In this document: positions 1-31,399 of the stretch, in pieces
How positions within the stretch are numbered: position 1 is the stretch's first letter
How the letters are laid out: each line of letters opens with the position of its first letter
Assembly (NCBI GenBank): GCA_001655205.1
Contig: LPNZ01009981.1
Coordinates: 1-37,566 of the forward strand
Length of the DNA: 37,566 nucleotides
Direction of reading: 5' to 3'
Source of the DNA: Lenisia limosa
Taxonomy: Eukaryota > Protista > Breviatea
Notes under the pieces: model-generated
Databases searched by the model: none
Told to the model about the DNA's origin: nothing
Seen by the model: only the letters and a program-made list of their open reading frames with translations
Made by a program: the position numbers and the translations under genes

Positions 1-3000
1 GAGGCTCTTCTGCTCAGCTGTGAGTCCGGGTTGCGAGAGGGTTTCAAGCAGACTGGCTTCTGCTGCGGCTAGAAGGTGCTTTCTGCGTCGTAAGCATTTA
101 GGAAATGATAACAAGGGGAGTACGACCAAAGCCGTTCACATTACCACTTCGTTGCTTTGGTCTATTTTTGAAGACCCTTCCCCTCCCACAATATCCCTTT
201 CTCACATTATCAATCACTATCATACTCCCATACATCACCCCCAACCTGTCACGGGCAATGGAGGAGAACATGGATTCTGAAGAGGTGCTGCCGGCGGCCG
301 AACGGGCACTGTCCGGGCCGGGGCCGAGGTCGCCTCTGGGGGGGTAAGTTTGATGTAGGCCAGTCGCTTCTGCATCCCATCACTCCAACGTACTAGTGGT
401 GTGTGTCGGTATATGTATAATCTACATTTTCCCAGATATAATAGTATATATATGTATATCATATATACATAAGTCTTGTCCACCCAGGCTTACGAGCTTG
501 CAGCAACTTCTATGTCCTCAACAAAACTGTCTTCCTCAGCCTTGGCCATTGCGGCCTCCATTCTAAACTATCAATATTTCCCTCACATTGGCATTATTGT
601 ACAAAACACCAATACAATATTCTTGGCTTAGATTAAGCGAAGCTCATTGGCACCACCAACCTTGCAACCACGTCATTAGTTTGGTTGGGCTCCTCAGCCT
701 CCTCCATGATCGAGCCCTCACCAAGACTGGACATGCTGCCTGGGGGTGTCAAAGGAGTGACCGATATCATGGACTTGAGATATTCAAAATAATAATAATC
801 AACAGAACATGAGATATTCAAACAATTTCTTTAATTTTCATACTTCAAGGAAACCCCAATATACCCTTATTTTGGGACTTTTTGGCGGCACGCGCGCGTT
901 TGGCCTCAAGACGCGATTTCAGCATCTTCTCTTGGCGTCTCTTTTCGGCACTGACGGCAGCCTCGACTTTTTGGATGGACGTCTCGTGAGACTGGGGGGG
1001 GGGGGGGTTNNNNNNNNNNNNNNNNNNNNNNNNNNNNNNNNNNNNNNNNNNNNNNNNNNNNNNNNNNNNNNNNNNNNNNNNNNNNNNGAGATGCAAAACA
1101 AAAAAGATAATAAGCTTGGAGTTTGGATCTACCCCCCCACACACACAAAAAAAACAAACACCAGAATGCAATATCATATTACTACTAATATATGATATCC
1201 AAAGAAACTGAATGATGGGTCCATGGAATCAAAACCGCCCAGTAGCGACAACCAGCTTACTGTTTTGAGTTGTTCGATTTGCTGTTGTAAAAGAACCTCA
1301 TCAGAGCACGTCTTCTTCTGCAGTTCAATAGACTTCTGCAGAACCTTTTCGCGCTCCTAGTGGGGTAAAAAGAGTGTATTCACTTTATGTTTGCGAGGAT
1401 CTGAAGCTGAGGCGCAAAAAGAAGTTCAACGTGTGTTTGTTTCTAATAGGTTGAAAAGCTGAATCGTACATACTATATATTTATAAAACCTTCAAGGTAA
1501 AGAAAAGCAGGCAAAGAAAAGCAAGGCAAAGAAACCACATAAAAAGATTCCACATCACATCACTTGGAAACCTAAGAAGAGACCCAGAATCAAGAAGTCC
1601 AATCAGACCTTCACTAATTGTTTACGCTTGAGGTTGATCTTCATTTCCAACTCAGCCATGGCCCTCTTCTCCTCCGCGTCAATATTGGCAAGCTGTGGTG
1701 TGGGAAAGTAAAATCCGTAAGATACAAGACAAAGAAGAAAACGTCATTGCATGTGGGTGAACCGCCCAACAGTTTCTTTACCCCCCTCCCCCAACAGTTT
1801 CTTTTTCTTTATCAGCGGACATAGAGGACATGCCACCCGCAGTGTTGAAAGAAGGCGGCTTGAGGGTCCTATTGAGTGAATGATACAAGTCAAGAATAGC
1901 AATCTAGAAGAAACAACAACAGCACTGACAACAAACAGCCACTTCAACTGACATTCTTGAAGGTGGCATTGATGATCTCGATCCTTGCATAGTTTCAACA
2001 CCAAGGCGGCTGCCTCCCATTGGGGCCTGCATTGTGAGGGGCTGTTAAAGCTCAGGTAAAAGATGATTGAGTATTCGATTGATGGGAGGCTTTGATATAT
2101 TTCATATAGAGGAGTGGAGACAGCAAACCGATTTTGACTGAACATGAGTGACATCAATAAATTAGGAATTTTAAAAATAAAGGAAATGGTAAAACACTCC
2201 ACTATGTCAAATGATGCTCAGCTCTCCCTGCACACAAACATCAATATACACTGACCGTAATAAACCTTGACCGATTTGCTATGTCATTTCTCAAAGAAAA
2301 TAGGGGTCACTGTATATTTTATCTGTACAGGCAACACCCATCCCCACATGGACCCTTGGAGGTAAGCCCTCCTTGATAGCTTTCTCCACCACAGGGGCTG
2401 GGAGACAACTCCTAGTAGGTGAGGTGACGGACATCACAATATTCCAAGGGTAATTTATAGGGCAATGAATTGAAAAAGCATACTATTTTAGTGTAAACTC
2501 AATTAGAAGCTGTAATTTCAAATTTGGTCAATTTCTTCAAAAAATGAATTGCACGGAGCCATATTATTTTAGGCAAAATCCGTTCACCACCCGATGTCTT
2601 CCCCCACCTGAAGAATTCCTCCTCCTCAACAGCCTCGAGAGCAGCAGCGTCCCTATCCACGGCCAAGACGGCCCTGACATGGCGGCTGAGCGCGAGGGCT
2701 CGGTCTTCTCCAGTTACGGATTGCAGCATTTCTGCCTCCAAAGTTCTGCAAAATGAATTGTTGGTGAAAATAGATTGGCCTTTTTTTATTAGTAATCTGT
2801 CTGCCACTCTTTACCTGTTAGAGTTGACCAGACTGGCCTCCCTTCGCGCGAGCCAAGAGCGATGAAGTTCCTGAGCCTGGTGCTGCTGTCCCTCAGAGAG
2901 GTTCGCAAGGAGGGTGCTTCTCATCATGGGGGGGATACGCCAGACGGGGTTGCTTGAAGACCTGAGAGTTGAGAAGACGTTTTTTTGAAAGGTGCACAAT

Positions 3001-6000
3001 GGCAAGAAACTCAAAACATTGATGATGAACCCAGGAGCCTACTCATTTGCAGCAGGCAGCATTCCAAGGCCTGCACCACCAACAGTAGAGAACTGCTGGA
3101 GAGATTCCAACTGAAGCATGAATACTGCCAAAAATAAACAAAAAGATTTATTCCATACTTGTAGTATACATACAAATGTTCATATATGATGTGTGACAAA
3201 CATATCATGTGCTCAATAAACACATCATGTACAATCAGATCATGTGCTATAGTATACATATCTCAATAAACTCATCTTCCCAGTGACCAAGGAGCTCACC
3301 TGGCTCTTTTGTTGGGAGATAATGACTTCCTGTTCATCGAGGGCTGCTTCTAACTCAGCTGTGTCTTCTCCTCCTGAGCGTGTCAATTAATTGATGATAA
3401 TTTGGATCAAATATAGAGAAGGTCCAAAATATCAAAGGAAATCAACGGTTAGTGATGGGATGCCCTTCAAGCCTCAGACCTCCAACTCCTCCCATGCCTG
3501 CTTCGCGAGTGCCTAGAGCAATAAGTCACAATTTGATAGCATTTGATTCCCTAAAAGGAAATCGTTTTCTTCCCAATAAGAACAATTTTTTTAAAAAAAA
3601 ACTCACAAATAATAAAAAAAAACAATAAACAATAACGAAACACGAACCACCCCATGATTGCAATGCCCTCACGCACGTCTGATGGCGGTTGCACTGTGAG
3701 CGGAGTGCGATACTAATCCGTGCCGGGCTACTGCAGCCTAAATCGTTATTTTCGGATGAATGAAAACTGAAAGATCCACATCTCTACAAAGTATCATCAT
3801 CTACCACTTTCTACACTAATCCTCTGACTGTGATGGACTTGATCCTTTTTTGAGTGGAAATATTATTCATATCGCTCTACCTCCATTTGGCATATCATGT
3901 CATATCACAAAAATAACATCAGATCATATTATTTTGCATATCAAACTATTAGAATATCAAATCATCATATGCGAGCAAATCAATGTAAGCCTTCAGGTCG
4001 ATGGCAGTCTTATCTCATCCTGAAGAAGAATTTCAAATGTTTATGGGGGGTAAGCTGTCCGCTCCTTATACACACCCCCAAAAAAAAATAAAAATAAAAA
4101 AGACAAAAGCCCTCACTCCATAGTAAGCACGGGACCCCCTCTGCCACCCGACCTGAGAAACAACGGCAGCCTGGGCGGCAGCCAGATGGGCGCTTGCCTC
4201 AGTCGCAGCCAGCGTCATAGGGGGGAGAACCTGGGGGATTAATCTTCGTGGAGAGGAGGGGGAGGGGTAGGAAATGTATAAAGCCCCCCCACACCTTTGC
4301 CAACTCTATTCTGCTGCTCTAATTCAAAGATACTCATACTACAATCTTCTTTTCTGTTGATTATGTAGACTTTGTGGGTAAAAACGTCGATGAATAAGGG
4401 GATTAGTAGGATCAGGCTTGCTCTAACGCCGCCCCTTTGCCAACTCTATTCTGCTGTTCTAACTTCTCTCCACCCCCTTCCCACTGCAGAGAGCTTGATC
4501 GCAGTCGCAGAGTGCTCGTTGGTTGCAGCAATGGCATCAGGAGAGAGACTCAGAATCTTTTCAAGAACGTCTCGTGACCTGGAGCGTCAGTATGGCCGCG
4601 ATTGAAATTCGCTGGAACATTGGCGGAATACTACCCCCCTTGTGTGTGTGGAACATAGTAAGTTACATGTTAGCGGGATGGTCATCCTTTCGTTCGCAAT
4701 CGTTGTTCCTTTTGTATCTCGAATGGAGCCCCGGAATCCCCCCCCCCCCCNNNNNNNNNNNNNNNNNNNNNNNNNNNNNNNNNNNNNNNNNNNNNNNNNN
4801 NNNNNNNNNNNNNNNNNNNNNNNNNNNNNNNNNNNNNNNNNNNNNNNNNNNNNNNNNNNNNNNNNNNNNNNNNNNNNNNNNNNNNNNNNNNNNNNNNNNN
4901 NNNNNNNNNNNNNNNNNNNNNNNNNNNNNNNNNNNNNNNNNNNNNNNNNNCAACTCTATTTACAATGATAATCTTGGAATCTTTGCTCACCAATTCCGCT
5001 AGGGCATGGATGCCTAAAACGTCCACACCAAGTCCCGAGGCGGATCGACGGGTGTGTTCCTCGCCAACAAGCCGTCTTATTGCTGCTATGGCAACCAGAG
5101 ACTCCTCATACGCCGCCTCCACGACCTTGAGTGTAAGAATTGGACTCAAAATGATAGAAAGTAAGGTCTAAATTGCTTTGCAGCACTTAATCATTGTCAT
5201 ATGTGGATTTGTCAAACAACTCTTCATTCTCATACCATTCACTTGTTTGTAAGATTTTCCTTCCCCTCTTAGTGTTCCTCAATACTTCTCTCGAAGCATG
5301 TCTCTCACCTTAACAGAGTTCTCTGAAGTGACGAGAGAGTCGCCGTGTTCCTCCTGGACCTGCCATACGACATCTCCTGCTCCTGCGACCCAAGGCTGCA
5401 AGGGGGTGAGAACAAGAGCTGTGATAGGTGATGGATGGTGTCAAATCAAACACACTATCGGAATGGGTTGGGGGGGGGGGNNNNNNNNNNNNNNNNNNNN
5501 NNNNNNNNNNNNNNNNNNNNNNNNNNNNNNNNNNNNNNNNNNNNNNNNNAGTTTTCGACGATGTATAGATAAATTCAGTCTTTTTTCGAACCGAAGTGAA
5601 GCCTTAGGTATCATCATGGGGTATCAACGATCATTTCAATGCTACTATCGTGTGTGGTTCTACTTGTCCAGCTTACCTGAGGGGGAAGGCAGTCAAGAGC
5701 CTTACACAGAACGTTGATAGTTCGGCAGACTGAGTCCCAAGCCGATTCTAGAGAACATTAGAACATTTGTGGTTGGAAAATAATAAACTTGGCAAGTATG
5801 AAGCAAATGTGTGTCGTGGAGCATTTTCACGTTGATATTGTAATGGTGGAAAACGTTATTCCACTTCTTGCCTTTACATACCAATCACCCTTACTGTAAG
5901 CAATGGGAATTAAAAAATAAGGATGTCTNNNNNNNNNNNNNNNNNNNNNNNNNNNNNNNNNNNNNNNNNNNNNNNNNNNNNNNNNNNNNNNNNNNNNNNN

Positions 6001-9000
6001 NNNNNNCTCGTATACATTCATATATTATAAGAGAATTTTAGCATACAATGATATAGTACACCAGATCAACAGAAGGATTAAATAATAAAACAGGAACAAG
6101 AACAAACCCCTCATACGCACAACAGCGTCACGTCGTTGACAGGCTTGGCGTCTGCGCCTCAATTCCTCCTCAATCTCCTGGACTGCATCATCTTTGTTGG
6201 CCGCACCCTGGCCCTCCCAGCCTTCATCGTTCATCGAGGCCGCCCATCTGGTGGTTAGTGGATTGAAAGAAATAAATTAATCTGATAATTGCATTTGTAA
6301 ATGCAAAATTGAACTAACATCAACAAAATATTCACCAAACAATTATGCCTATCAAGAGACCCGATTTACCGCTCAGTTCTCCGAAGCCCTGCAGCCGTAG
6401 CAGCCAAGCTGTTCAATGCTGACCTCTGCGACCCAGTAATGTTCGAAGTGGAGTTTCCACGTGCCAGGCCACAGTGTGCAATGGTTTCGGCGATATTGCC
6501 AAGGGCTACAACAACGTCGCTCGAGGTCAGAAGGGCCTTCTTTCCTTCACCCAAAGCCATCGCGGTGGCCTGGGCTGCGTCGACGTACGTCTGCCACGCC
6601 ATGATTTCAGCAAAGCTCTGTTCGCCTTCGATGCCCGAAATAACGGGTTGAAGCGTTCCAGCAGGTCCAGGGACGGCCATAGTCATGATACCGTTCCGTC
6701 CGTTCCATATGTCCTCCTGGTTGGACATGGGGGTCAACGGGGTGCCGTTTTCGCCGAGGCCGGACAGCGGGAAGACTTGTCCGAAGCTGTCCATTGATAC
6801 GCCCACGACGGGGAGAGGGCCCTTGTCTGCCGGTGCGGTGTGGCTAGTTGCGGCACCGTAGACAATCGGAGTTGGCTTGAACGTGATGGGACACGACATT
6901 ACGCCACCGATCGGGAAGGGCTCCCCGCTTGTTGGGTCAATCGTCACGGCTAAGACCGGGCATTTGATGTTGGAAAAAGGATCGATCACCTCGGCGCCCG
7001 GAACTATTCCACTCGAGCCGGCAAGACAGCATGTCGGCAGACGGGCGCCACCGGGAAGCGGGGCGAACGGAAGGAGTGTGGATGCGTTACTTGAAGGCAT
7101 GTTCGGCCACCCCAGGAGAACGATAGTGTTTTCGACTGGATCATAGGCAGCAGTCGAGGTGAGGGGAACAGCCCTTCCAGTCCCGGGGTGGAGACAAAAC
7201 AGCCCATGAGTTTCGGGGTGATACTGCACAATGTCATAGTCCGGTTGTGCGGTGGCGGGGGTAGCGTATTTACCTGCGGCTGCGGGTTGGTCCGGCTTGG
7301 GCTTGCTTTTTACAGAAATTCGAATCCCGGGCTGGAGCATAAAGAGCCCGGTGCTGGGGTCGTACATGGCAATGGACACTGGCGGGGCAAAGTTACCAGA
7401 CTGGTTACGGAACCATTCAGGCCCGGTAATGAGACTTCCCGTTTCGGGGTTGATCAGTTCGACACCCGAATAACGCCCCCCGAAGCCATAGATCTGCCGC
7501 CTCTTGCCCTCCGAAAGCACAGCATCACTCAAGGTGGCGACGCTCTCAGTCATCGCGCTATGGAGCATGTTGAGGCCGGTGGCAATGGATTCAATGTCCT
7601 AAGGAATTATCACTGAGAAGTAAAGCCAATATACTTTGAACACCTAGCGTTTCAATATGGCACGTGGATGATATGGAAGTGAATCCATAAATGAGACGAT
7701 TGGTGGAATATTTGACTATGAAAACGGAATGTGATATTATTACAGGATTAAAACCTTGACCAACCTGGACTGCTGATCCTGAAAGCAAAAGTTCGGTTCC
7801 AGCCACCAGGGATTCAAAGCGGTCGGCTAGAGACGCCAAATGCGCAGTACTGGAAGGTGACACATCAATTAAATAATTTTCAGACTCCAACATTAGACTA
7901 TTGTATGGACCATTATTCAAATGTAATGGTTTTGTAATGGAAAATAAAAAAACCGAATGTAAGACCAAAGACACTGTGAATAGAAAAACAGCTGATTAGA
8001 AAAATATTACTAAATGCAATTTGAAAAGCCCAGCCAACACAGAGTGTCTCTTGATAGTCTCAGCAGTTGCCGTCCTTGCCGCTTCATGGGCGTGCATGGT
8101 GAACTTTCCAGCAACGGCTTGCCGTCTCAGTACCTCGTTTTCACTGAGACCTGCGAGGCCCTTGCGCTTGGATGGCGCTAGAATGTCCAAGTTTCGGAGA
8201 AGCAAGGCTTTCAGGTTCTCATTTTGGTCACGAAGTACCCTAGAAATAATTATCTAACTGTTTTTAAAATAAATCACTGACAAACAGATGGGTAGCATTA
8301 AAAGATTATCACGTCCACATACCTATAAAACGATGCCGCTTCAGCTTTGGTCCGACTCAGTTGCGTAGAAACATGAATTGTTTGGTCCTCGAGCTTATCA
8401 TAGAACAACTTGGCCGAAAAGTCCTCAACCGTTCCGTCTCCGACAGTATGAACGACCTCCTTTGACGCAAAGCCATGGAGGCTTGTCTCAGCCTTCACAC
8501 GTGTCAGTGCGGGTCGTGCTTCATAGTCTGTCTCCGGTTTCCGCAAGGCAACAATGGTCTGCTGAGCCTTTTGTCGGTTTGAGCTTGCCGGAACTCGGCC
8601 GAAAACGGGGACAAATTGTTCTCCGACGCGTTTGTAGGGTGGCGGTCCAGTTGCGGATGCTCTCCAGCGAATGAAAAAGAGAATGAACGCAAGAATGAAG
8701 AACAAAGCCGTGAGCGCACCAAAGATCATCATCATTAAAAACCAGTCAGTTTTGAGTGTTAAGTTCATGCGAGGTGTGACACCCGCAGCAGTAAGCACAG
8801 TCGATGTTGTTGGAAGAACTCGAGCCAGCAAAGATTCAGGAACTTCTTCTTCTTCCTCAAGTACAATTACAATGAGTCTCTGGTCCAATTCAGCAGCGTC
8901 GCCGAAAACGTAGGTTCCAGACTCGGTAAATTGGAATGTGAATGAGGAGAGCTCCAGAAGTGGGTTGCTTTGGACGTTCGCCAGGCGACGGAAGTCTCCA

Positions 9001-12000
9001 TAGTCGAAATCCTCGTTTGTGTTAAGGAGGGCTTCGGGTATGTATTCTGGATAGTGTTCAGCGGTGACTGCGAAAGAAACAGCCTCTCCAGTAAGGAGCA
9101 CCATGGTTGGACGAATAATGCCGCCTGAGACGCCGTCGCCACTTCCAAGGTCCGTGGACAACGTGGAGTTCTCAAACCAGGCAGATTCTGCACGGCGCGC
9201 AGCGGTGGTAGTGAAAAGACTAGTGAGATAGGACGGGTGGGGGTCCAGAATGCCTCTAACTACACCACCAGCAAAAGACGTATGGAGAACAGAAAGGTTC
9301 TGACCCGGTTTAAGATCAACAGCCCACGCGGCTGACCAGTTTTCAGTCGAGCTCGCGTCTTGTTCAAGCTTGGTGTTGGTTCGTGGGACCTTCACAACGA
9401 TATTGAGACTTCCATCGTTGCTTGCTTCGACGGTCAACACGGCCTGGGAGCCGCGACAGTTGGCATCGCAGATCTCATCAGGGTCCGTAACATCACTGCA
9501 TTCGCATGCTGGGATGTTGGAAATCTTTTGCCCGGCATTGGGAATAAGTAGTTCTCCAGTTGTAGGATCACGACCAGCGCATACAGCGGCGCAATGCGAC
9601 TCGTCATTATCGCATTCTCCGTCCGGGTCCCGAGAGTCGCATCTGTCATAGGTCTTCTTGATGCAGTTCTGGGGACCACTTTCGGAACTCTCTACGCCTG
9701 ACGCCAAGAAATAGGCGTAACCAGGCTTACAAAGACACTTGCCGTCGGATTGTTGAAACGATCTGTTGGATCCGAAACACTCACAGGTTGCCCTGCCTTC
9801 TTCAGAGGAAGCAGAGGCACCACAGGGGAGACATGATGGCGATGCAGTAACAGGTGAGTATGACATAGCTGGACAGGGCAAGCACTCGGTAATGTTGCTC
9901 ATTTCGTATTCCGAATTGAAAGTGCCTGCAGGACACGCAATGGTTTCATACGAGCCTTCAGGGCAGTAGTATCCGGGCGGGCAGCGGAAGCCCTTGTCAT
10001 CCACAAGAGACACTGGAGTTGCAGTGGGCGTTTCGCCAAGACACACAAAACCTGCCGGGCATGGAAGGCAGTCCACGCGTTCACTTGCTCCACCAGCTTG
10101 GTACGTTCCAGGTCCGCAGACGACACAAGCCGTGTCAATCGACGATCGTCCTAACGCAGTTGAAGGGTAAAGAGGTCCGAAGCCAAGAGGACAAATGAGG
10201 GGTGATTGGCTGGCAGCAGGGCAGTAATATCCAGAGGGGCACTCGAGAGGGAGGTCAGAGTCATTAGGACAGTAGAATCCCGCTTCACATGGCGTTTGAA
10301 GCGACGTTCCTGAAGGACACAAATAACCGGGGTTGCAAGGGACAGCAAAAGATGCCTCGTTGTTACATTCGGAGCCTGTGGGACAAATAATAGGAACAGA
10401 TACCCCAGACGGGCAGTAGTAACTATCAGGACAAGCAATAGGATCGGCTGTCATTTCGGGACAGTATTTCCGTGCCGGGCATAGAGTGATTGAGTCAACA
10501 CCTTCGGGGCAATAGTACTTTTGGGGGCACGGGGTGGGTGTCATGGTGTTTTCTTCGCAATAATGGCCGGGGAGGCATAGGGGACAGTCAGCTGGGCTGC
10601 CGGCACCTTGAATGGCGGAGTATCGGCCTGCAGGGCAAGGAATAGAGAAATTAGCAGCTTCAAGACAATATCCACCGATAGGACATGGGTACTGATCCAA
10701 GTTGGATGTGGCTTCGTCAATACACAGTGTTCCTGGGGGGCATGGCAGACAGTCCTCCTTTCCTCCAGCAGCAGTGGATGGGAAGTAAGTTGTACGTGGA
10801 CAAGCCATTTGTGGCTCATCCGCTGGGCAATAATAGCCAGAAGGACAGGGTATGGGGGTTGGATCGCCATCTAAACAAATATAACCTGCAGGACACGGTC
10901 CACAGTCACTTGCCATTGCGGCTCCGGGAACAGCTCTGACCGTTCCTAATGCACAGGCGGTGGGAACGAGACAGGCCTCAGAACACCAGTGGCCGATCGG
11001 GCATGGCCCGTTTTGGCTAGGTGCAGATGAGGTGCCGTTGACACCATCAGGTCGAGGGTCGTCCGCACCGGAGTAGCAAATGTAACCAGCAGCACAGTTA
11101 CCAGCTTCAACGCCACCAAGACAGTATTTCGTTGACGGACACTCCGCACATTCGTCGGCACTTTGAAGGCCCGGAGTGGAGCCGATCCGACCCGCAGGAC
11201 AGAGAACAGGGTTACCAGTCCCTTCAACACAGAAATGACCAAGTGGGCATTCGGCTGGCACAGTGGCGTTTCCAAGACAGAACGTTCCGGGCGGACACAA
11301 GTCGCAGCTATCAGAACCCTCAGACAATTGATACTTTCCGTCTTCGCATCCGACAGGATACGGAGAGCCCTCGGGGCAATAATAGCCAGCAGGGCAAAGG
11401 TGATTTCCTGTGTATTCATGCACGGCCTTGGTGTTGTCATCACAATATACGCCGGCTGCGCAAAGAGCAGTCGGGGTGGTGAGAGCAGTACCAGCGCAGT
11501 AGTAACCAGGCTGACAGTTGAGACAGGAAGCAAGTGAACTACCACCCTCGCTTGGTCGATACGTCCCAACGGGGCATTCAATGGGCATTGTAGCACCACT
11601 TGGGCAATAGTATCCGGCAGGGCAGGGTCCGTTATCTGGGAAGCTTCCGACCGGTTCCGCAACTGCGGAGCCATTCGGACAGAACCACCCTGCACTGCAG
11701 GGACCAGTAACGGCCGAATTGCCTGTTGACTGACAATAAAAGCCGGAGTCACAGTACTGACAGTCCTCGATAACATCCGCATTGACATTGGGGTTGAATG
11801 TCCCGGCGGGACAAGGTTCGGCTACTGATGAGCTAGCAGTACAGTAATGGCCGGTAGGACAGTTTGACGGAACCGACATTTGAGGTGCATCACACAAGCG
11901 TCCTGCTGGACAAGCTGTGCAGTTTACCATGCCTGTGGAAGGTGCGTATGTTCCAGGAAGACATTGCTGGGGAGAAGAAGAGCCTTCAACACACACGTTT

Positions 12001-15000
12001 CCGACAGGGCAAATATCGCCATTGACTGTTGGGCGGGCAATTGTCGTGCCACCTGAACAGTACCATCCCTCGTCACATGGACCTGTGATTGCTGAACCTG
12101 GGGAACTGCCATCACAGTAAAAGCCCGGGGAGCAGGATTGGCAGTCTTCCACACGTTCTAACCCGGCGAGAAGAGAGGCGCTACCAGTTGGACAAAGAAC
12201 AGGCATTGTTGAGGCCTGTAAACAGTAATAACCGGCTGGACACTCACCGCCGTCTTTGGAAGCCAAGCCCAAAGTACAAGCATCATCACCACAACCGATG
12301 GTACAATATTGCCCCGCAGAACACTCGGGACCAACAGCAGACATCGCGGTTGTAGGACAATAGTGACCTCCCGAACATGGTGTACATTGGTCGACATTAA
12401 AAAGATCGGTAGAAGCAGAAAATGATCCAATAGGGCACGATGATGGACTAACTCCTGTCCCGTTTGGACAGAAATGTCCGGTAGAACAGTCAGCCGGTAT
12501 GATAGTGGTTGGTCCACATTGTTTACCGGCAGGGCACGACACACATTCTGACAACCCAATAGTACCACTATACATCCCTGCCACACATGGTAAGGGATCA
12601 GCAGTACCAAAGCCCGTTGATGAAACGTCTCCGGGACAATAATGTCCCTCGGGACAGGGGCCACCATTTACGGATGCCATGGGTTGGGCTGTTTGTTGGG
12701 CAGTCTTACACCAATAACCGGGTTCACAGGGGCCTGACGCTGCCCCAAGGCCTAAAATAGTGAAAGCGAGATAAAATTTTAATCATATTCAAATAGCAGT
12801 ATTTTTTTATGCTTGATGATGTATCCTACACTCACCGACCCAACATACCAAGAGAAGCACAGAACTGTCCAGCGGGACAATCTTCACAGAGAACTGGGTC
12901 TGTTGCACCAGATGATGGAAGAATCTTGCCGATGGCACATGGTAAGGGGTTAATTGTTCCGGCGGAGCATGTATGACCTGGAGGGCATGGTCCACCACCT
13001 TGGCTTGTTGACGCAGGGGCTGAAAGAAACGCCCCGCCACTACAGTAATATCCAGCTTGGCAGTCTCCAGCGGGCGTTCCCATTCCGGGAATGTCACAGT
13101 ATTGACCTGGAGGAAATTAAATACTGTTGTTGACCCATTTCATTTCCGTGTGTCTTTTCCAATTCCCCATCCCCCTTCATAGTTACATTTCAATAAGAAT
13201 GACGGGTAATGTAAAGTGTATTTCCGTTTAACATGAAATAATAATAACAAACAACCAACATACCTGGGGGACACAGAGCGCACTGGGTGGAGTTCGAGAG
13301 GTTGATAGCTGACGACGCGGTTCCAATTGGGCAAAGTTGTGGGGAGTCAGTCCCAAGGGGACAATAACGGCCGGCCGGGCAATCCAGGTAAATCTGGGTA
13401 CCAAGTCCCGGGCAGTAGTATCCTGACGGACAGTCTTGGCAAGCACTCTGGCCCGACTCAGTTGTGTAAGTACCAGGAGGACATAGTGTGTGGTTAGCTG
13501 CAGCGGCCTCACTGTAAGAACCTGGTGCATGAGAGAGGGACGGTAACATTACAATTGAAAATTTATTAGATTTATTAGTTTAGAGAGTTTGAATATATTA
13601 GAGTCATCATATGTTTGCAAAAAAAGTTTACAAATTGAGGAATGGACAAATAACATACCTGGTGGAGTAATATGCTGCATGGGGCTTTCAGCCGTACCAT
13701 CACAGTAGAACCCAGCTTGGCATTCACCAGTCACGGTTGCAAGTCCATTGGCTTCGCAATAGTAACCGGCGGTACACGGGTTACAGTCTATGAGGGCAGC
13801 AACACCGGTTCCAGGAGCAAATGTACCACGTGGACAAGGTTGCGGCGCGGCTGAGCCAGTAACACAGTAATGCCCAACAGGACAAATGTCCCCTGTGAAG
13901 TCGCCAGTGGGTGCTGATGATGACGCTGTTGTGATGCAGTAGTAGCCTTGGAGACAGTCGGCTGTGGGGGACGTGAGTGCTATGCCGTTGCAGTACTGGC
14001 CGCCTGGGCAAGAGACGCACTCGGAGAGGCTTCGGAGACCGGTCACATTACTGAAGGTTCCTGAGGGTGTCAATACGGTTATTTTATGGACTCAAGAAAA
14101 CTTTTCCAAAACACGAAGAATAATTATTGAATAGCAAACCTGGAGGACAGCCCTCAGCAGCAGTACTTGACTCAACACAGTAGAAGCCCATGGGACAAGG
14201 AAGCGGCTCTTCCATTCCCCAAGTCAGACAGATAGTTCCGGCTGGGCATGGCGTACACGCAGCAGCTAAGCGTTCACCTTCCACACTGTTATAGTATCCT
14301 GGAGCACAGGCGTTCTGGGTTGGCGAGTCGGAACCCGCAAGGCACCAATGTCCCTTTTGACACAATCCATCAGGTGCATCCAAACCCCCACTGCAGAAGC
14401 GACCAGCAGGGCATTCAAGGCAGTCCGTAATGACTTCTCCAAGAAGACTGGGGTTATAGTACCCGGGTATGCACGGGACGGGGGCTGCAACGGCTTCAGG
14501 GCAGTAGTGTCCCACGGGACAAGGATCAATTTGCCCTGTCGGAACGTGGTCGGTCCCAAGTGGGCATGTCATGCTTTTTGGGCATCTATTGAGGGCCATT
14601 TCAGCATCAGACGTGCCTTCTTGGTGACAGTAGAATCCTGCCGAGCACGACGAGCAAACTGACTGACCTGAAGGTGAATATTCTCCAATGAGGCAAGGAT
14701 CTGGAGTGATAGTTGTACCCGTGCATTTATATCCAGCTGGGCAGGCAGCGCAGCTCAAAAGGGCAGTTCCTCCTGTAGCTTCCCGATACGTGCCTGGGGG
14801 GCAAGACGCCGGGGTAGTGGAAGGACTTTCGCAAAAGTATCCTGAAACATTAAGAATGGCAACAACAAAGTGCAATAATTCAACAAAACAAGTAAAAATG
14901 TGATTTGTAACATATTTTGCTAGTATGACCCAAACTGTTGGCCAGTCTCGTAAATAATAGCATAATCTTTCAAGCTGGAAATGACGGGTTTCTATCAATC

Positions 15001-18000
15001 ATATTAAATGAAGAAATTTCGTCATACCTGCAGGGCACGAGGTGCACTCATAGCTGGCAACAAGATCGGTTGCTGCGGTATAGGTACCACTTGGACAGGG
15101 ATATGATGTTGCGGTGGGAGTGGACTCAGGGCAGTAATGACCAGTTGCACAAGGGCCGGAAATTGCTGAGTCTCCACCCAGGCAGAAAGAGCCTGGAAAA
15201 TCAGTAATTGCCCAGTATACCAGGATACGTGAAACAATAAAGCAATATGGATTTTATAGATTTGGACCCCCCCCCCCCCNNNNNNNNNNNNNNNNNNNNN
15301 NNNNNNNNNNNNNNNNNNNNNNNNNNNNNNNNNNNNNNNNNNNNNNNNNNNNNNNNNNNNNNNNNNNNNNNNNTGCAAAACTTGCAATGTGTTGCTCAAC
15401 CCACCCTGAGTACAACTGTAGCATTCACTTGAGGCTGTGAGCGACACCATTGGAGAATATGTTCCTGTGTGTGATAAACTGTTTGGAACAAAAAAAAACG
15501 GTCTGCCATACAGGGAATAATTTACATGGTACATTATCTCTTATGGTGTACTGCTCAAATCCAGTTGAGAAAAAAGCACAACATACCTGGGAGACAAGGG
15601 AATGAATTGGGTGTTGGTGTGCCTAAGGGGCAATAGAAACCCGCAGCACAAGGCAGCGACGAGCTGGCCCACTTTCCCGTTCCGGCAGCACATGCACGGC
15701 CGGCGGGACAAGTTGTGCAGTCTTCGGCTCGGATGAGAGAAGTTTCGCCAGTGTAGGTTCCGGCCAAACATGGGTAATCCGTGGGGTTGACAGTGCCTAA
15801 GGGGCAATAGTGACCCTCTGCGCACGGCGTTGAGGGGAGTGACAGGCCAGAGGTCGGGCATGATTGACCTAAAGAGAGTAGGGTAGTGAATGAATGAATC
15901 ATATTGAACTAAAAGACTCCATAAGACATAAAATATGTATGTAAGAAGAAAGAAAAGTATAGAGATGTTGAAATGACCACATTTCAAATGACATTGGGAG
16001 GAGGCAAACCTGGAGTACAATCTTCACAAGAGAGGACGTTAACACCTCCGATGACAGATCTAAAGGTTCCCGCAGGGCAGGGTGTTGGAGATATCGAGCC
16101 AGCTGGACAGTAGTTTCCAGTGGGACACTCTGAACAATCCGAAGCATCCTAGATAGTCAATTTCATATTCAAAAATTGCCTGGGTCTGCTTTTTTGTATA
16201 GTTTATATTAATGTGGTTCATTGAACATCTTAACGAGATCTAGCCACCCACCACTAAACCTGAGACGGAACCAGTGTACTTTCCAGCAGGACACGAGACG
16301 CCAGTTCCAGGAACAATCGTAGATGGGGTGGAACCTTAGCGCGTCAGATGAGTAATACTCACATTTATACACATCTACCAAAGAAGTAATCACATTTATG
16401 AAAAAAAGATACCAAGCTCGGACTTGTTTTGATACATAAAGACGGGAAACTAATGATCCTTGATGTTGTTATCCGTTACTGGGGGTGGGCGGAGAAATAA
16501 ATATCAATATGAAACCTCTGAAAGGAGAGAACCATATCGCCTTACCATACCTGGTCCGCAAAGGTAGCCAGCAGGGCAGAGTAAACTATCATCAATGCAA
16601 GCCTGGGGGCAGTACGATCCGGACGGGCATTGGAGACACGCGGATATGAGGGATGATCCATGCTCAGAGTTATAGGTTCCTGCAAGGCAGTCTAAAGCAG
16701 TTGGTAATGTCTAAATTACATTTCTAAAATTAATAGACAAGAAACGAAGTAAAATAAATATTGACAAGTCAAACTACTTGCAATGTGAAATCTGACTAAT
16801 GACATTCATATCAAATCATATTTAAAAGGCTTTTCTGTTTCTTTGACATTCACTACAGAAACAGACACCGTGTCAATGTAACCCAAACACTTTTCTCAAA
16901 ATATGATTAAAACTTCAACTCAAGCAACATATACGAGGCTTTGATTGCTTTTTTCAAAATTTAACGAGGAGGGAGAGTAAAACATACCAGTAGAAATTCC
17001 ACCACTGCACCAATGGCCTGGTTGGCAAAGGTTGTCAGAGAGCATTTCAAAGTAGGTCAGAGCAAGACTCTGGGCAGGGTGTTAACAGCAAATCCAGTAA
17101 ATAATCATATCATTTGTTATTCTCCCCACAAGCATCTATTATGACAGATAATCATATATAGTATCATCAAAAAAATATGGCGAAGGTGGCGAAAAAACAA
17201 AAACTACTCAATTCTGATAAAGAAACGCACAAAACCTCAAACGTTGCAAAAATAACCCGCGGTGCACGCTTCACAGGCTAATGCCTGGGTGGCCTGGCCT
17301 GATAAGCGGCCGAATGTCAGGACTGGACACGGAATGGGCTGTGGTGATAATGCCTAGATGGTTAACAAGGGTGGTAATGCCTGAGGAGTTAGAGTCGAGT
17401 CGTAGGAGTGTAAAAATGCCATTTCAAGAAAATACTGTCTGTGGAAATAAGAAAAGCATGAAAAAGCCGACAGATGTGATAGAAACCATTTCGAGCACCC
17501 CCCCCCCCCNNNNNNNNNNNNNNNNNNNNNNNNNNNNNNNNNNNNNNNNNNNNNNNNNNNNNNNNNNNNNNNNNNNNNNNNNNNNNNNNNNNNNNNNNNN
17601 NNNNNNNNNNNNNNNNNNNNNNNNNNNNNNNNNNNNNNNNNNNNNNNNNNNNNNNNNNNNNNNNNNNNNNNNNNNNNNNNNNNNNNNNNNNNNNNNNTTT
17701 TTGAGAAATATTATTTGCGCTTTTCTTTTTTTTAAAAAAGAAAACAAGTTGTGAAGAGGAAACAAGTTGTGAAAAGAAAACAAGTTGTAAAAAGAAGAAA
17801 ACAAGTTGTAAAAAGAACAAGTTAAAAGAAAACAAGTTGTAAAAATTCCCAATAGTATCCATGTCACCTCAAAAAAACAACCCCGACCCCCTTCCCACCA
17901 GCTGGACACGTGGAACAAGACACTCCAACAGATCCGGATATCGCGTACGATCCTGCTAAGCATGCCACGGCCGCTGAGCTAAAACCGATTACAGATTCTC

Positions 18001-21092: not shown

Positions 21093-22130
21093 ATGGGTAA
21101 AGGCGAAATTTTCACGATCGAACTTGTTATTGAAGCGTTCAAAAAGATCCACATTGAATCCGCTCTCCTAGAAGCCAATGCGAACCTTGAATGTCTCGAA
21201 ACTTCCCCTTCTGGAGTACCCCTTATTCCCAGAGAGGCCGATGTTGAGTTAGATTCATTCTGTGGAGCATTGGACGCGCTTATGAAGATGTTCAGTGTTC
21301 TTGGTCGTGCTTTTGGGTTTGTTTCCGCTGACGTTCATGACAAGACTGGAATCCTTCGCAAACTCCGTGAAAAGGCCAATGATGATGGAACCGACCCTTT
21401 CAGGGGGCTCAAGCCACTTGTAATGGTAAGCCTTACAGACCATGGAATTCCATTGACCTTTGTCAGAGTGATGTTGAAAACGGAACTACGAGGGCCAACA
21501 AGTCTGGGGCTCGCACGCTGTTGAGATTAGCCTGGGCCAACGAATTCATTGGGGATATGCTCAAGGAGATCAGGAGCTGTATGTTGGGAGGTTTTTTTTT
21601 TTTTTTTTTTTTTNNNNNNNNNNNNNNNNNNNNNNNNNNNNNNNNNNNNNNNNNNNNNNNNNNNNNNNNNNNNNNNNNNNNNNNNNNNNNNNNNNNNNNN
21701 NNNNNGAGTCCCTTCACACCAACGCCAGTGATGCTTATAACCGCACACTGTACAACCATCATCCTTGGATTGTTAGAAAGGTAGGGGGGTGGGGTGAGAC
21801 TTTTTTCAACCGGAGGGGCATGACCTCATATTGTGACTTCAGAGCTTCATTCCCTAGACTGTTGCAGCAGCACTCTACACACTCCCCTGCAGAGCAAAGT
21901 TCCTGGCTTCTGTGCACTTAGAGTAGGCGTGAGGAAATTGTCCATTGTTTTGGAGGAAAATTATGTGTTTGGTAGTCTTGATGCGAGCTTGGAATTCCAA
22001 TTATTTGCATTTGACAGAGTTTAGTGAGGAGTCAAAGAATGAGCCTTTTGATGAGTTGATCGCGCTTTCTGACCCTATTCTTGGTCTCCTTGATTTTTAC
22101 GAAGAGCACGATTTACTTGGTATCATTTAA
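21093..22130 (+). CDS. CPTP: GLTP-domain lipid transfer protein, CPTP/ACD11 (ceramide-1-phosphate transfer) type; 5 exons
   Basis: Spliced protein contains FGFVSADVHDKTGIL, SGARTLLRLAWA, AYNRTLYNHHPWIVRK and C-terminal FYEEHDLL, the motifs of the GLTP fold. Introns start gtaagc, gtatgt, gtaggg and gtaggc. The N-gap 21614-21704 hides an acceptor. Stop TAA at 22128-22130. Confidence 0.8.
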
Positions 22131-25577: not shown

Positions 25578-28008
25578 ATGTTGTCTAAAAGGAAAGTTGA
25601 GAAGAAAAAAGAAGAAAAGAAAACTTCAAAGCCCAGCCGCAAAAAGGAGTCGTCCTCAAAGAAAGATTCTTCCCGCTCAGACAAAGAAAAACATGTACCA
25701 GCTGAATCATCGGTAAGTATAGACGTTTTAGTCATACGCTCTGAACTTTGCTGGCTTTTCGAAGGCCTTATCCCGGTGTAGGGATCCCCACGCTTTGATC
25801 GGAATGTTTCTGCCAGAATGACTGGACAGGAGCAAATTTTAGAAAAGTTACCCTCTTTCAGAGGTGAGTTTTTGGATTGTACTTCCACACTTTCGTCTCC
25901 TAGCCTCCTCTTATCATATTTAGATGTCCCAGCTTCAGATAGACAGAGCCTCTTCGTCAACAAACTCACCCAGTGCTGCACATTGTTTGACTTTGCTGGT
26001 ATGTGATGAGTCTGTAATAAGTCCCCTTACCCTCTCAGATGTAATGAATGATTTGAAAAGCAAGGAAATTAAAAGACAGACCCTCTTAGAGCTTGTTGAC
26101 TTCGTTATGTCATCTCGCAATGTCCTCACAGATTCGGTTTACCCAGCCCTTGTCAAAATGGTTTCCACCAACCTCTTCCGCACCCTCCCCCCCAGCGGTA
26201 ATCCCGCCGGTGTTGCTTTCGATCCCGAGGAAGATGAGCCTGTTCTTGAAGCTGCGTGGCCCCATCTTTCTATTGTTTATGAATTTCTTCTTCGAGTTGT
26301 GGAATCCCCCGACTTCAACCCGCACGTCTCTAAGAGGTTCTTCGATTGCACCTTCGTCACCCGTCTCCTTGCTCTCTTTGACAGCGAGGACCCCCGTGAA
26401 CGTGATTTCCTCAAAACAACCCTCCATCGCATCTATGGCAAGTTCCTTTCTCTCCGCGCCTTCATTAGGAAGAGCATTGCCCACATCTTCTTCGAGTACG
26501 TTTACGAGAGTGAGAAGCACAATGGAATCGCTGAGCTCCTCGAAATCCTTGGCAGCATTATTAACGGCTTTGCCCTTCCCCTTAAGGAGGAGCATAAGGT
26601 CTTTTTGTCCCGCGCTCTCATTCCCCTTCACAAAGGAAAGGGAATTGCCCTCTACCATCCCCAGGTTGGATTCTTCCTCCAATTATGTAACTTCCATGAC
26701 CTAAATACCTTTTTTGACAATTCAGCTTGCCTACTGCGTGGTCCAGTTTATTGAGAAGGACCCTGCATTGACCTATGAGGTGATGAACGGTCTGCTACGC
26801 TTCTGGCCCCAGGTTAACAGCCCAAAGGAAGTCATGTTCCTCAATGAGGTAAGAGGATCCTTCCCTCCTCTCCCTCACTTGTGCTATGTCCTTTCTCATT
26901 TTTTTTTTTTTGTTTTTTTTTTTTTTTTTNNNNNNNNNNNNNNNNNNNNNNNNNNNNNNNNNNNNNNNNNNNNNNNNNNNNNNNNNNNNNNNNNNNNNNN
27001 NNNNNNNNNNNNNNNNNNNNNNNNNNNNNNNNNNNNNNNNNNNNNNNNNNNNNNNNNNNNNNNNNNNNNNNNNNNNNNNNNNNNNNNNNNNNNNNNNNNN
27101 NNNNNNNNNNNNNNNNNNNNNNNNNNNNNNNNNNNNNNNNNNNNNNNNNNNNNNNNNNNNNNNNNNNNNNNNNNNNNNNNNNNNNNNNNNNNNNNNNNNN
27201 NNNNNNNNNNNNNNNNNNNNNNNNNNNNNNNNNNNNNNNNNNNNNNNNNNNNNNNNNNNNNNNNNNNNNNNNNNNNNNNNNNNNNNNNNNCTACTTATGG
27301 AACAATGAGTATGTTGTCACATTGATTGCCGAAAACGCTGAGGTTATTCTACCTATCGTGTTCTCCGCCTTGTATAAGAACAGCAAGACCCATTGGAACC
27401 GCTCGATCCACCCCCTCGTCATCAATGCCCTCAAGCTTTTCATGGAGGTTGTTCCCGAGCTCTTCGACCAGGTTGGAGGGGTCAAATACAATTTTTGGTG
27501 AAGGAAAACAGAAATCATCGGAAGGTCACCCAACCCAACGCTTTATATAGGCATTTTATAAACTATTCAGTGTACGACGAACTTCAGACGTGAGACTCTC
27601 CGCGACCGTAAGGAACTGGAAGACCGTATGAGACGCTGGAGTATTGCTGAGTCTGAGGCTTCTCGTATCGCTAACGCCAAGGGTCTTGGTGAGAGGATGT
27701 GCAATTCCTGAAATTCTACTTCCAGCTTATTAGTTCCTTTTCTTTTTTATCTTCTACCTTCCTCGACTCATGGACTAGTCTTCAAGAAATTGATGTTGAT
27801 GGGAATTGACTCGGACATGGTTACCACGCCAAAGACTGAAGCTGTCGATACTGAAGGTGCTGATGATGGCGGTGGATCAAGGCGCGAAGAAGGCTCCAAG
27901 AGACCAAAGAACTACAACCCAAAACTCAGGCGAAAGTCTCTCCTGCCCCAAGATACCAACACTGTCGAGGCGCTTGCCCGTCATCGTTCCCTCGAGGACA
28001 TTGTTTAG
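25578..28008 (+). CDS. PPP2R5: PP2A regulatory subunit B' (B56/PR61, PPP2R5 family)
   Basis: [98 protein letters not shown] and C-terminal RRKSLLPQD. The N-gap 26930-27290 must hide the coding segment just before YLWNNEY. Stop TAG at 28006-28008. Confidence 0.97.
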
Positions 28009-28226
28009 TTTGTAGTTTCTATTTTATTGTTACAGTTTTGTTTGGTTTTTTTAGTCTGTTTCGTGCAACTTGGGTATTGTTGATGTAGTGATCCACACTT
28101 TCACGTCACGGATAAGAACCTGCTTTATTTTCATTGAATAATACAGTACAAAACTTAGGAATAGGAATGGTATTAAACAAAATGAGCCAGATTGATGATG
28201 ATAATTATATTGCTGAGGAGATACAC

Positions 28227-28703
28227 CTATTTACGAGGCTGGTTCACGTTATGAGGCTTTGCTTGGGGTACATTCTTAGCTTCCTTCACGTGGATCGGAT
28301 CATGGTCATGGGTTGGTTTCTAAACAGTTAACATAGCATAATAAAATATAAAATAAAAAATAAAAAAACGCAGTTCCTTCGTCCTCTTACGATCGGTGTT
28401 GTGGTATGTTCGACTTCTGCGTTGTCGCCAGGGAGATTCGCCTTGCCGACATGATGTTCCTAAAATCAATGAGATGCCATTATTCATCTCACATTCACAA
28501 AGGGTTGCTGCGAGAGGGCTAAAAGAGAGAAAAGTTGAAGGAAAATCCCAAACCTTGTGTTTATGCGGGTGCTGAACGATTCTCATGCCTCCAGCCTTCA
28601 CTAAATTGAATAAATACTACAATCCCATTTTTGAAAAGAGAAAACCAAGAAGGGATATTTACCTACCGGCTTCAGGATGTCCGGCTAGTGTTTGAGGGGC
28701 CAT
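28227..28703 (-). CDS. DAP: Death-associated protein 1 (DAP/DAPL1 family) homolog, 81 aa, 4 exons (28703-28667, 28600-28554, 28459-28391, 28319-28227)
   Basis: Spliced product MAPQTLAGHPEAVKAGGMRIVQHPHKHKEHHVGKANLPGDNAEVEHTTTPIKPTHDHDPIHVKEAKNVPQAKPHNVNQPRK*. It carries both family hallmarks: N-terminal AGHPxAVKAGGMRIVQ (human AGHPPAVKAGGMRIVQ) and C-terminal QPRK (human IQQPRK). All three introns are GT-AG and phase-consistent. Confidence 0.92.
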
Positions 28704-29091
28704 TTTCTAAATGAATTAGGGCAAATATATGAAAATGCTGCCTCTGGGCCAACATACATTTTGTAAGTTGAATGAAGACTAGTGACAAGGGTGATTTGAT
28801 GTTCTGCAAGCTTTGTTTGTGACGTTGGTTTATTATATTGAATATTTTTTTGGTGAATGTGAAAAAATGAATTTTTTGTTTTTGTTTAGAGAAATATCGA
28901 GATTATATCGATAATTTTCTAGACTGGATGGATAATAGTATTAATTATATTTATTCTTCACTAAATTTTCAAAGAAGTTTTCACAACAATTCTTCGGTGA
29001 AGCAAGGTCATATTAGTACGTCTAACAGAAAATTGATACCAGCATTATAAAAATACAGACTATGTTCTAAAATACTGTTGATCCAAGGAAG
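28704..29091. promoter_or_regulatory. Putative bidirectional promoter, DAP / coiled-coil gene (388 bp)
   Basis: Spacer between divergent start codons; TATCGATA palindrome at 28906-28913, near the midpoint. Confidence 0.6.
28707..28757 (-). other. Putative 51-nt 5'-UTR intron of DAP
   Basis: gtatgt...ccctaattcatttag|aaa-ATG: a canonical donor, a branch-like CTAAT and an acceptor 3 nt before the ATG. Confidence 0.6.
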
Positions 29092-31399
29092 ATGTCGACG
29101 GATTCAGGGGCTGAACTGCCTCCAGAGTCTCATACTGAGAATGATGCAGCAGTAGAAGAAAGCCCATGTAGTATTGGCCCTGACTCACCAAAATCAGAAG
29201 ACGTTTGCCATAACGAAAGTCCTAATTTTGAAGACAATATGGAAGAAGAATCACCAGAAAGCCAGCAGGAAGTTGAGTCCCCAAGCGCGGCCCATTCTGA
29301 TAGTATTGTTACTATCCTCCAGACAGGCCAAGTACCCTCTGAAGATGAAGCTGCTATTTTGGAGTTCATGTAGGAGTCATGACTCGCAAAATCCTTATCC
29401 CTCCCAGATCACAGCTTGAGCAACACAGAGTTCAGTGCGAAGCAGATGGCAACTACATGGAGGCAATGCTGGCGAATAAGCGTTCAAAAGAGCTTACTAA
29501 ACAGTATGCTTTCCAGCAGTTATTTAAGATCGAACAGGAGATATTGCGTTTTTTTTTTTTTTTCGTTTTTTCATATTCTATAGCATGTCAAAACGGAAGG
29601 TTGAAACCGTGAAAGCCTCTCAATCGGCTGAACGGATGGCGGTTCATGAGTCGCAACTTCTGGAATTCCACCAATTTAATGCGTTGTAAGTGGGTGTTTC
29701 TTGACCCTTTCAAATAGTTTTGATGTTTTGTCGCAGCCCTGTTAAAGGAAGAAATGTGATGTAAGGAGAAGTGTATTAATAATTGCTCTTGGTGAGAGGT
29801 CTACATTAACTTCCTTAATATACCTTTTTTCACCAGTTTCATCGTTTGTTATGGCTCAGGTGGGATGCTAAACTTGAACAACATGAAGCAACATGGGCCC
29901 AGGCAGCTGAGGATCTGAAAGTGGGATTAAGGGAGTCAACTTGGCCCATATGTTTATCAATAGTAATAAACACCAATTGTTTAGTCCTACGTGGATTTAT
30001 AACAATCAATTCGTCAAAAATTGACCAGTAATAGGAGACACACTCACGAAGAATGGCGGAGTTTTATGATGCTATTGCCGCCGCAGAGTTCCGCCCACGT
30101 TTCAGCAAGGCGTTGTTAGAAATGAGGTAGGAGGAGGGCTTTTCTATGATTCAAAATGAGACATCAAATATCCATGTTATAGGCTGTTTCTCAAGGAAAA
30201 TTTGGAGTATTTGGTTGACCTATTGCTCTTCCCTTCTATGAAGATTCGATATCATTCATTTGTTAACAGTTTTAGAAATATTGAAAAATCACATGCAACC
30301 AAAAGGAAATACCGAGAAGCACAGAAAGTGAAAGCCAAAGCAGATGCATTGGTGAGAAACTGTTTTCTTGTCTTGGTTATTCTAATTGTAATTTATGAGA
30401 CTTGTTATTCGTACTTCAATAACCTTCAATTCATTTATTTTTTTCTTAACAGCTACATTTAGGAAGCAGTTGAAGTAGAGAAACAAGTTAAGGAGAGGCA
30501 GGAGTCTATCAAACGGCGCGAAAAACAAATCAAGGCACAACAGAAACTGGTGAGCCCGCTGACAGCTGTGTGTGAACCTACTTCAAATGATTAGCTTTTT
30601 ATCACAGTATGATAGCCTAGGGCAAATGTGGGAGAGAATGGTTCGTGATATTTATCATTACATTCGCTCTGTCGTTTTGATTCATTATTCAAGGAAGCGA
30701 GAGCTCTTGAAGAGAGAATCACACGCCAGCGCAATGAACGATTGAGAGAAAAGGAAAAGGCCAAGTACCAGCTGACAAGGAAATTCAAGAACATGAAAAA
30801 CGAGCTCAATACTCATCACTGTTTGCGTTTGTGCAATTTGAGTGTTCTTTAGTCAACATACTGCAAAGGAAATTTCCCATATTGGTACTATCGGGTTTTG
30901 TGGACACACTTTGCGAAAAGGAGGGATATTACACAGAGTGAATGAATACTGCTTTTATTGACAACCTTAGCTTCGGAAAATGCCCGTCAAGCCCGACTAC
31001 AAACACTCCAAACAAAACGCCAGAACACAACAACCCGCTCAAAACGCCTCACAAGCACCGCACCCCTCCCGTCCATTCCTTCAAAGAAACCCCCTCCAGG
31101 TATGCATACCTGCAGTCCTTTCGGACCCTGCTTTTTCATAATCTTTGTACCTCCCTGTGTAAATGTGATGGTCTGGATGGCTTTGGCCATTCCTTCAGTA
31201 AACTTTCTCATGAGAGTTTTTGTCAATATTACTTTAAAAAAAAAAAAAAAAATAGCTCCATTTCACAATTTATTGAGAATTCTCATATTTCGTCTTTTTT
31301 GACATCAAACTGAATATGAGGTGAAGATCTTTCCCTTCAATTCTTGCTCACAATTCAGCCACAGCTTGCTTGTCTCCTCGAGGTAGCCCCCCGCAGCAG
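29092..31399 (+). CDS. Uncharacterised coiled-coil protein with an acidic, Ser/Pro-rich N-terminus; 3' end unresolved
   Basis: Phase-consistent exons give MSTDSGAELPPES...EFISQLEQHRVQCEADGNYMEAMLANKRSKEL...EFHQFNALWDAKL...PRFSKALLEMRNIEKSHATKRKYREAQKVKAKADALEAVE...RERNERLREK-type helical sequence, then a Ser/Pro/Lys-rich tail. Exons beyond 31099 are uncertain. Confidence 0.65.

Follow-up and report, generated by a model that had tools for sequence, protein, structure and literature searches.

The minus strand of the analyzed window, that is, the whole 37,566-nt stretch of Lenisia limosa contig LPNZ01009981.1, is predicted to encode between positions 28227 and 28703 a new, divergent member of the already known DAP1/DAPL1 protein family. 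Our overall reading of this locus, to which we assign a probability of roughly 0.55, is that of a four-exon gene whose 81-aa product would most likely plug the ribosomal exit tunnel together with eIF5A and is devoid of a human-type mTOR switch. That the 81-residue protein is a true DAP1/DAPL1 family member, divergent and shortened, is by itself highly probable. This homology, anticipated in an earlier note made from the DNA letters, is well supported by the family motifs at both protein ends, by profile matches of exons 2 and 4 in the order of the family, and by a phase-1 intron held in common with other DAP genes.

Both strands were read and the exon borders located by script, which delineated on the minus strand four predicted coding exons and three introns, all of the latter starting with GT and ending with TTTAG. 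Coding exon 1 (28703-28667; 37 nt) opens with the ATG at 28703-28701 and comprises 12 codons, ending in AGHPEA, and the initial G of a Val codon that continues in exon 2. This GTG codon, which belongs to AVKAGG, is divided as G|TG by the phase-1 intron 1 (28601-28666; 66 nt; GTAGGT...TTTAG). Coding exon 2 (28600-28554; 47 nt) completes it, (G)TG then KAGGMRIVQHPHKHK, and runs for 15 codons that begin as (V)KAGGMRIVQ and provide the core of the N-terminal DAP motif. It is followed by intron 2 (28460-28553; 94 nt; GTTTGG...TTTAG; phase 0; GC 0.39) and by the 23 codons of coding exon 3 (28459-28391; 69 nt; GC 0.54), which specify a His/Thr-rich linker. Finally, intron 3 (28320-28390; 71 nt; GTAAGA...TTTAG; phase 0; GC 0.25) precedes coding exon 4 (28319-28227; 93 nt including TAG), whose 30 codons plus stop end in the tail V-N-Q-P-R-K. 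The coding total of 246 nt equals 81 codons plus the stop, and the exons (GC 0.47-0.59) stand out against the introns (0.25-0.39) in base composition. An in-frame TAG (28709-28707) is found two codons 5' of the ATG, which is embedded in the context AAAATGG. Re-reading of the minus strand returned the same coordinates, motifs, length and exon number as the earlier note, all of them correct, and the locus is thereby predicted to be a real and intact gene with GT-AG splicing.

None of this structure is apparent in existing annotation. The mechanical ORF list offers at this place a 93-aa ORF (28320-28601) that corresponds to exon 2 running into intron 2, that is, the chimeric exon-intron fragment described in the note, and the stored gene calls for the contig hold zero genes at the locus. 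The note's remark that short multi-exon genes are easily missed applies here: because this one went without any called gene, genes of such kind appear to be invisible to ORF-based calling.

The immediate surroundings of the gene are compact. An AATAAA hexamer at 28124-28129, 97 nt 3' of the stop codon on the same strand, is a possible polyadenylation signal by consensus match only. Upstream, an AT-rich spacer of 388 nt (28704-29091) separates the ATG from that of a divergent plus-strand ORF (29092-29373), which spans 93 acidic, Ser/Glu-rich codons, yields no Pfam match and is likely to represent exon 1 of some larger gene; the spacer is presumably the shared promoter region of this divergent pair. 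On the other side, a gene for the PP2A regulatory subunit B56 (25924-28008, plus strand; PF01603, 304 bits for its first exon) converges on the DAP-like gene, and their 3' UTRs may overlap, since only 218 nt lie between the two stop codons. The B56 gene has ordinary GT-AG introns of ~62 nt and longer, and its core is ~68% identical to human B56 gamma as estimated by eye, a value that is not informative as an indicator of the organism. The window further contains 12 runs of N (21-361 bases; e.g., 26930-27290, 21614-21705 and 4751-4950), none of which touches the DAP-like locus; those at 21614-21705 and 26930-27290 come straight after long T homopolymers within introns and look like masking or scaffolding gaps.

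According to Leesch et al. (bioRxiv 10.1101/2021.11.03.467131), two motifs are common to all Dap proteins, namely an N-terminal P-A-V-K-A-G-G-M/K-R and a C-terminal I-Q/H-Q-P-R-K/R-(x). The former reads here E-A-V-K-A-G-G-M-R across the joint of exons 1 and 2, thus matching eight of the nine positions, and the deviating position 1 is also variable in animals (HPTA, HPQA). The latter reads V-N-Q-P-R-K followed by the stop, with a conservative replacement of I by V. The invariant Gln is kept as residue 78 of the model, directly before P-R-K, and corresponds to Gln105 of Dap1b and Gln109 of Dapl1. In the ribosome complexes described by the same authors, this Gln occupies the site of the last residue of a nascent chain and bonds the hypusine of eIF5A, its mutation abolishes ribosome binding, and in the frog and fish proteins the N-terminal motif forms crosslinks beside Rpl31, at the exit of the tunnel. 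The residue preceding the invariant Gln is Asn, not the Gln/His that in Dapl1 bonds 28S rRNA at this position. Asn occurs there in 3 of 110 animal members among the matches listed, and also in an environmental locus, L010. This locus (1103-1402, minus strand), whose tail N-I-N-Q-P-R-K carries the same Asn-Gln as the window protein, and L017 (57-344, plus strand) are environmental DAP transcripts that start with M-S-D-D-E-S-K and stand apart from the springtail-like majority.

These motifs co-occur at the locus beyond chance. Translated in six frames, the 37.6-kb window contains a single KAGG[MK]R, a pattern that none of 300 shuffles produced, and QPR[KR] at most two residues from a stop was found once against 0.12 expected. 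Both occurrences share a strand, are separated by 357 nt and follow the order of the family.

To place the exons against the family, reference loci were collected by scanning a metagenome collection with a degenerate DNA pattern encoding KAGGMRIVQ. The scan returned 19 loci, all of them DAP genes, of which 12 are intron-less transcripts (96-108 codons) and seven are genomic; all 19 are animal-like in look and none resembles the short 81-aa form. An alignment profile was built from the 12 full-length environmental ORFs. This reference set is sound, since every one of the 12 matches Pfam PF15228 (best 4.4e-29) and the profile also finds in the PDB the ribosome-bound chains of Xenopus Dapl1-B (7OYC_s1, 5e-14) and zebrafish Dap1b (7OYA/7OYD_s1, 3e-13). 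In a protein database it retrieved 1,194 proteins, 120 of which were listed and, where a source was named, were arthropod or echinoderm 'death-associated protein 1'.

The DAP-profile search proposed in the note as a check was made with single pieces of the window. A larger profile of 125 DAP proteins was compared with each of the 1,988 stop-free pieces obtained from all six frames. The best score went to the exon 2 piece (19.1 bits; E 1.9e-4 within the window) and the next to exon 4 (10.7 bits; E 0.073), the latter over the last 22 profile positions (82-103 of 103); both are on the minus strand, and the third-ranking piece reached 5.5 bits. Exons were also searched singly against Pfam, where the exon 2 read-through piece aligned to positions 8-22 of the 98 of PF15228 (DAP) with E 0.035, but its 15.5 bits fall under the gathering cut-off of 27 bits. 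Exons 3 and 4 gave zero Pfam matches, and exon 1 is too short for this search. Aligned one by one to the 12-ORF profile, exons 1 to 4 are colinear, occupying positions 8-16, 18-31, 73-80 and 84-104, respectively, with exons 1 and 3 scoring about 0 bits each. Protein searches with the single pieces were blank. A word-index search with the exon 2 read-through ORF returned no candidate, the same index having given >1,000 DAP proteins for the profile query, and an exhaustive search of 1.84 billion representatives with the 31-residue exon 2 piece yielded zero matches at E <=0.001. Such blanks with the exon 2 piece are expected because its match spans 16 residues, and they are uninformative. Likewise, phmmer against the PDB with the exon 2 and exon 4 pieces was blank, and ESM Atlas searches provided zero usable matches.

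The position of intron 1 constitutes a separate line of evidence. In the window gene, this phase-1 intron interrupts the Val codon of A-V-K-A-G-G as G|TG, and its acceptor is TTTAG. In six genomic DAP loci (L002, L006, L011, L012, L015 and L020) an exon begins as cag|TN-AAR, that is, at the same acceptor position and phase, and the donor side of exon 1 was found in two of them, L012 and L015, as ...H-P-x-A then G|GT. That intron position and phase coincide argues independently for descent from a common ancestor. For introns 2 and 3 no match to the reference loci was obtained. The metagenome contig L016 (Ga0065711_1074970) bears a mammal-like DAP exon, either host or contaminant DNA, and was left out of the comparison.

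It could be argued that the frame has opened by chance or is a decaying, unexpressed relic, in that exons 1 and 3 lack independent statistical support. We hold this to be very improbable. Each motif is present a single time, where chance predicts 0 and 0.12 occurrences, and the pair shares one strand and the order of the family. No other piece of the window matches the profile as well as exons 2 and 4, and AGHPEAVKAGG is restored only by splicing a GT-AG intron at the position conserved in the family. In addition, all four exons are in frame, and the stop follows immediately after the C-terminal motif. The evidence favors an intact DAP gene.

The predicted protein is nonetheless markedly divergent. 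With 81 aa, it is shorter than the reference DAP members (96-154 aa). It is small, basic and rich in His (11; 14%) and Pro (10; 12%, compared with ~15% Pro in the family), with 9 Lys (11%) and 2 Arg and with neither Cys, Phe, Trp, Tyr nor Ser, a composition from which we infer a disordered chain. The S-P-P-K block is absent from all four exons, S-P-P being present in 116 of the 120 animal members listed, and the F-[HY]-x-K-P block, which 108 of these 120 have, is absent from the protein too. S-P-P-K is likewise missing from the ribosome-bound Dap1b and Dapl1 chains; therefore, this block does not define the whole family, nor is its loss an argument against ribosome binding. As judged from the exons, the 81-aa protein would have kept only the two ends of the family and lost its middle.

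This divergence bears directly on the mTOR and autophagy role of the family that the note had evoked. PMC7973646, citing Koren et al. 2010, describes human DAP1 (102 aa) as an mTOR substrate and autophagy suppressor, and its phosphorylation sites S3 and S51 are said there to be mTOR-dependent. The window protein has no counterpart of S3 or S51, as there is no serine in any exon; its N-terminus is M-A-P-Q-T, not M-S-S-P, and the sole proline-directed candidate is a single T-P dipeptide encoded by the 3' end of exon 3. Lacking both serine and S-P-P-K, the protein could not operate the human-type switch (phospho-S3/S51) in the same form, and this part of the note's proposal is weakened accordingly.

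The two ends that are kept are those found close to the ribosome in frog and fish, where one branch of the family blocks the exit tunnel of dormant egg ribosomes, and for this reason the same mode of action would be the most likely one. Specifically, in non-growing cells the tail of the 81-residue protein would enter the exit tunnel of empty 80S ribosomes, where Gln78 would pair with the hypusine of eIF5A, and the N-terminal motif would sit near Rpl31 at the tunnel exit. Tail and eIF5A would together hold the 80S ribosomes silent, to be released on regrowth. That the protein binds ribosomes in this Dap1b/Dapl1 manner, through exit tunnel and eIF5A, is a proposal by analogy to which we give slightly less than even odds. 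Given that Q-P-R-K at the C-terminus and the N-terminal motif are both conserved, an exit-tunnel plug serving cysts or starvation, as put forward in the note, is nevertheless a reasonable proposal.

The tail of the window protein ends at K and is therefore of the DAP type, a feature that also fits a true DAP gene with a main role other than ribosome plugging, its product being a small disordered regulator of autophagy, growth or stress signalling. Indeed, vertebrate and fly Dap, which end in this way, showed weak or no binding to rabbit ribosomes in vitro and left translation unrepressed (Leesch et al., bioRxiv 10.1101/2021.11.03.467131), and suppression of autophagy has been described for human DAP1. 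In the same study, however, adding or removing one tail residue made no difference in binding, and in vivo the egg ribosomes of zebrafish carried Dap, whose Gln was required for binding. Moreover, the conserved parts of the window protein are precisely the two that solved and crosslinked complexes place on or inside the ribosome, whereas the mTOR-linked ones (S3, and S51 in the S-P-P-K block) are those lost. We regard such a different main role as possible but less likely than the exit-tunnel plug.

The evolutionary meaning of the gene hinges on the origin of the contig. The source is a metagenome-style assembly; an exact look-up of neighbouring ORFs matched a single contig, NODE_179 of ENA ERZ3820729 (39,069 nt, coverage 28.8), which is present in no other sample. 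The DNA might belong to some other eukaryote of the sample, such as a small animal, with an ordinary invertebrate-type DAP1 gene, a source with which the common intron position fits equally well. The 81-aa protein is, however, so unlike 132 animal or animal-like members, with blocks found in 90-97% of the 120 listed being absent, that this origin is unlikely. The compactness of the locus, with introns of 60-94 nt and intergenic gaps of 218 nt (convergent stops) and 388 nt (divergent starts), also speaks against it, and we judge it improbable. We thus continue to read the gene as one of the protist. Introns read across the window are ordinary GT-AG ones of about 42-94 nt.

Several other genes were noted along the window. 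A glycolipid transfer protein (GLTP) gene at 21093-22130 (plus strand) has as its first intron an ordinary GT-AG one of 42 nt. An uninterrupted 1,460-codon ORF on the minus strand (8298-12680) belongs to no Pfam family, is alone in its 90% cluster of a 15-billion-protein collection and occurs on this contig only. Beside it, a minus-strand run of ORFs (13549-16020) encodes cysteine-rich Ephrin_rec_like repeats (PF07699; 28.9 bits in 14087-14998), and these ORFs are probably exons of a single large surface-protein gene.

Our search of the literature for non-animal DAP1 retrieved nothing specific, and no protist member was mentioned. In the papers found, Dap1b/Dapl1 is a vertebrate egg factor with single invertebrate orthologues and the family is treated as animal, one NMR paper loosely assigning it to 'most eukaryotes'; according to a 2024 review, the breadth of conservation of the individual eukaryotic hibernation factors is unclear. 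The DAP family, and perhaps its ribosome silencing too, may therefore be older than animals. If the gene is that of a bona fide breviate member with an animal-type intron position, the origin of the family moves before animals, and the protein would be a stripped-down natural variant showing which DAP parts are needed. The weight of this point depends on the contig being that of the protist and on curated databases listing no non-animal members already. More tentatively, and in our estimation unlikely to hold in full, the Dap-eIF5A exit-tunnel plug would be at least as old as the breviate-opisthokont ancestor, with the 81-aa protein as a natural minimal form (two ribosome-contacting ends and a short linker, no mTOR sites) by which the anaerobic protist would park its ribosomes in starvation or oxygen stress.

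Among known systems, SNOR of Schizosaccharomyces pombe (PMC13345908) has a similar outline, since its C-terminal tail lies in the exit tunnel of dormant 80S ribosomes and contacts hypusinated eIF5A. SNOR is nevertheless unrelated, and we claim no sequence relation: it has a folded SBDS-like domain and licenses restart rather than only blocking. Human DAP1 is closer, with motifs at both ends, a Q-P-R-K tail end and a disordered, proline-rich character, whereas the window protein is ~20 residues shorter and contains no serine, so that a human-type mTOR switch is not supported. Invertebrate Dap1 (springtail, insect, spider, echinoderm and environmental transcripts) represents the single-copy ancestral type, which the window gene resembles; its tail ends at K in 96 of the 120 members listed, and the phase-1 intron in the Val codon of AVKAGG is held in common (L012, L015). 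The invertebrate proteins differ in their length (96-154 aa) and in that most carry M-S-S-P, S-P-P-K and F-H-x-K-P, all three absent here. With respect to zebrafish Dap1b and Xenopus Dapl1-B (PDB 7OYA, 7OYD and 7OYC), which bind ribosomes, the protein described here is a putative ribosome binder. It has 81 aa compared with 109-113 aa, its tail stops at K where theirs is one residue longer, Asn replaces the second Gln that makes the 28S rRNA bond, and their D-F-P...H-x-K/R-P middle block is unrecognisable. Dap1b and Dapl1 are, on the other hand, likewise small and disordered, and S-P-P-K is absent in all of them; the AGHP-x-AVKAGG-x-R stretch of zebrafish Dap1b is matched at 12 of 16 positions (counted by eye), and the Q-P-R-K of the window protein keeps the very Gln that in these complexes contacts the hypusine of eIF5A.
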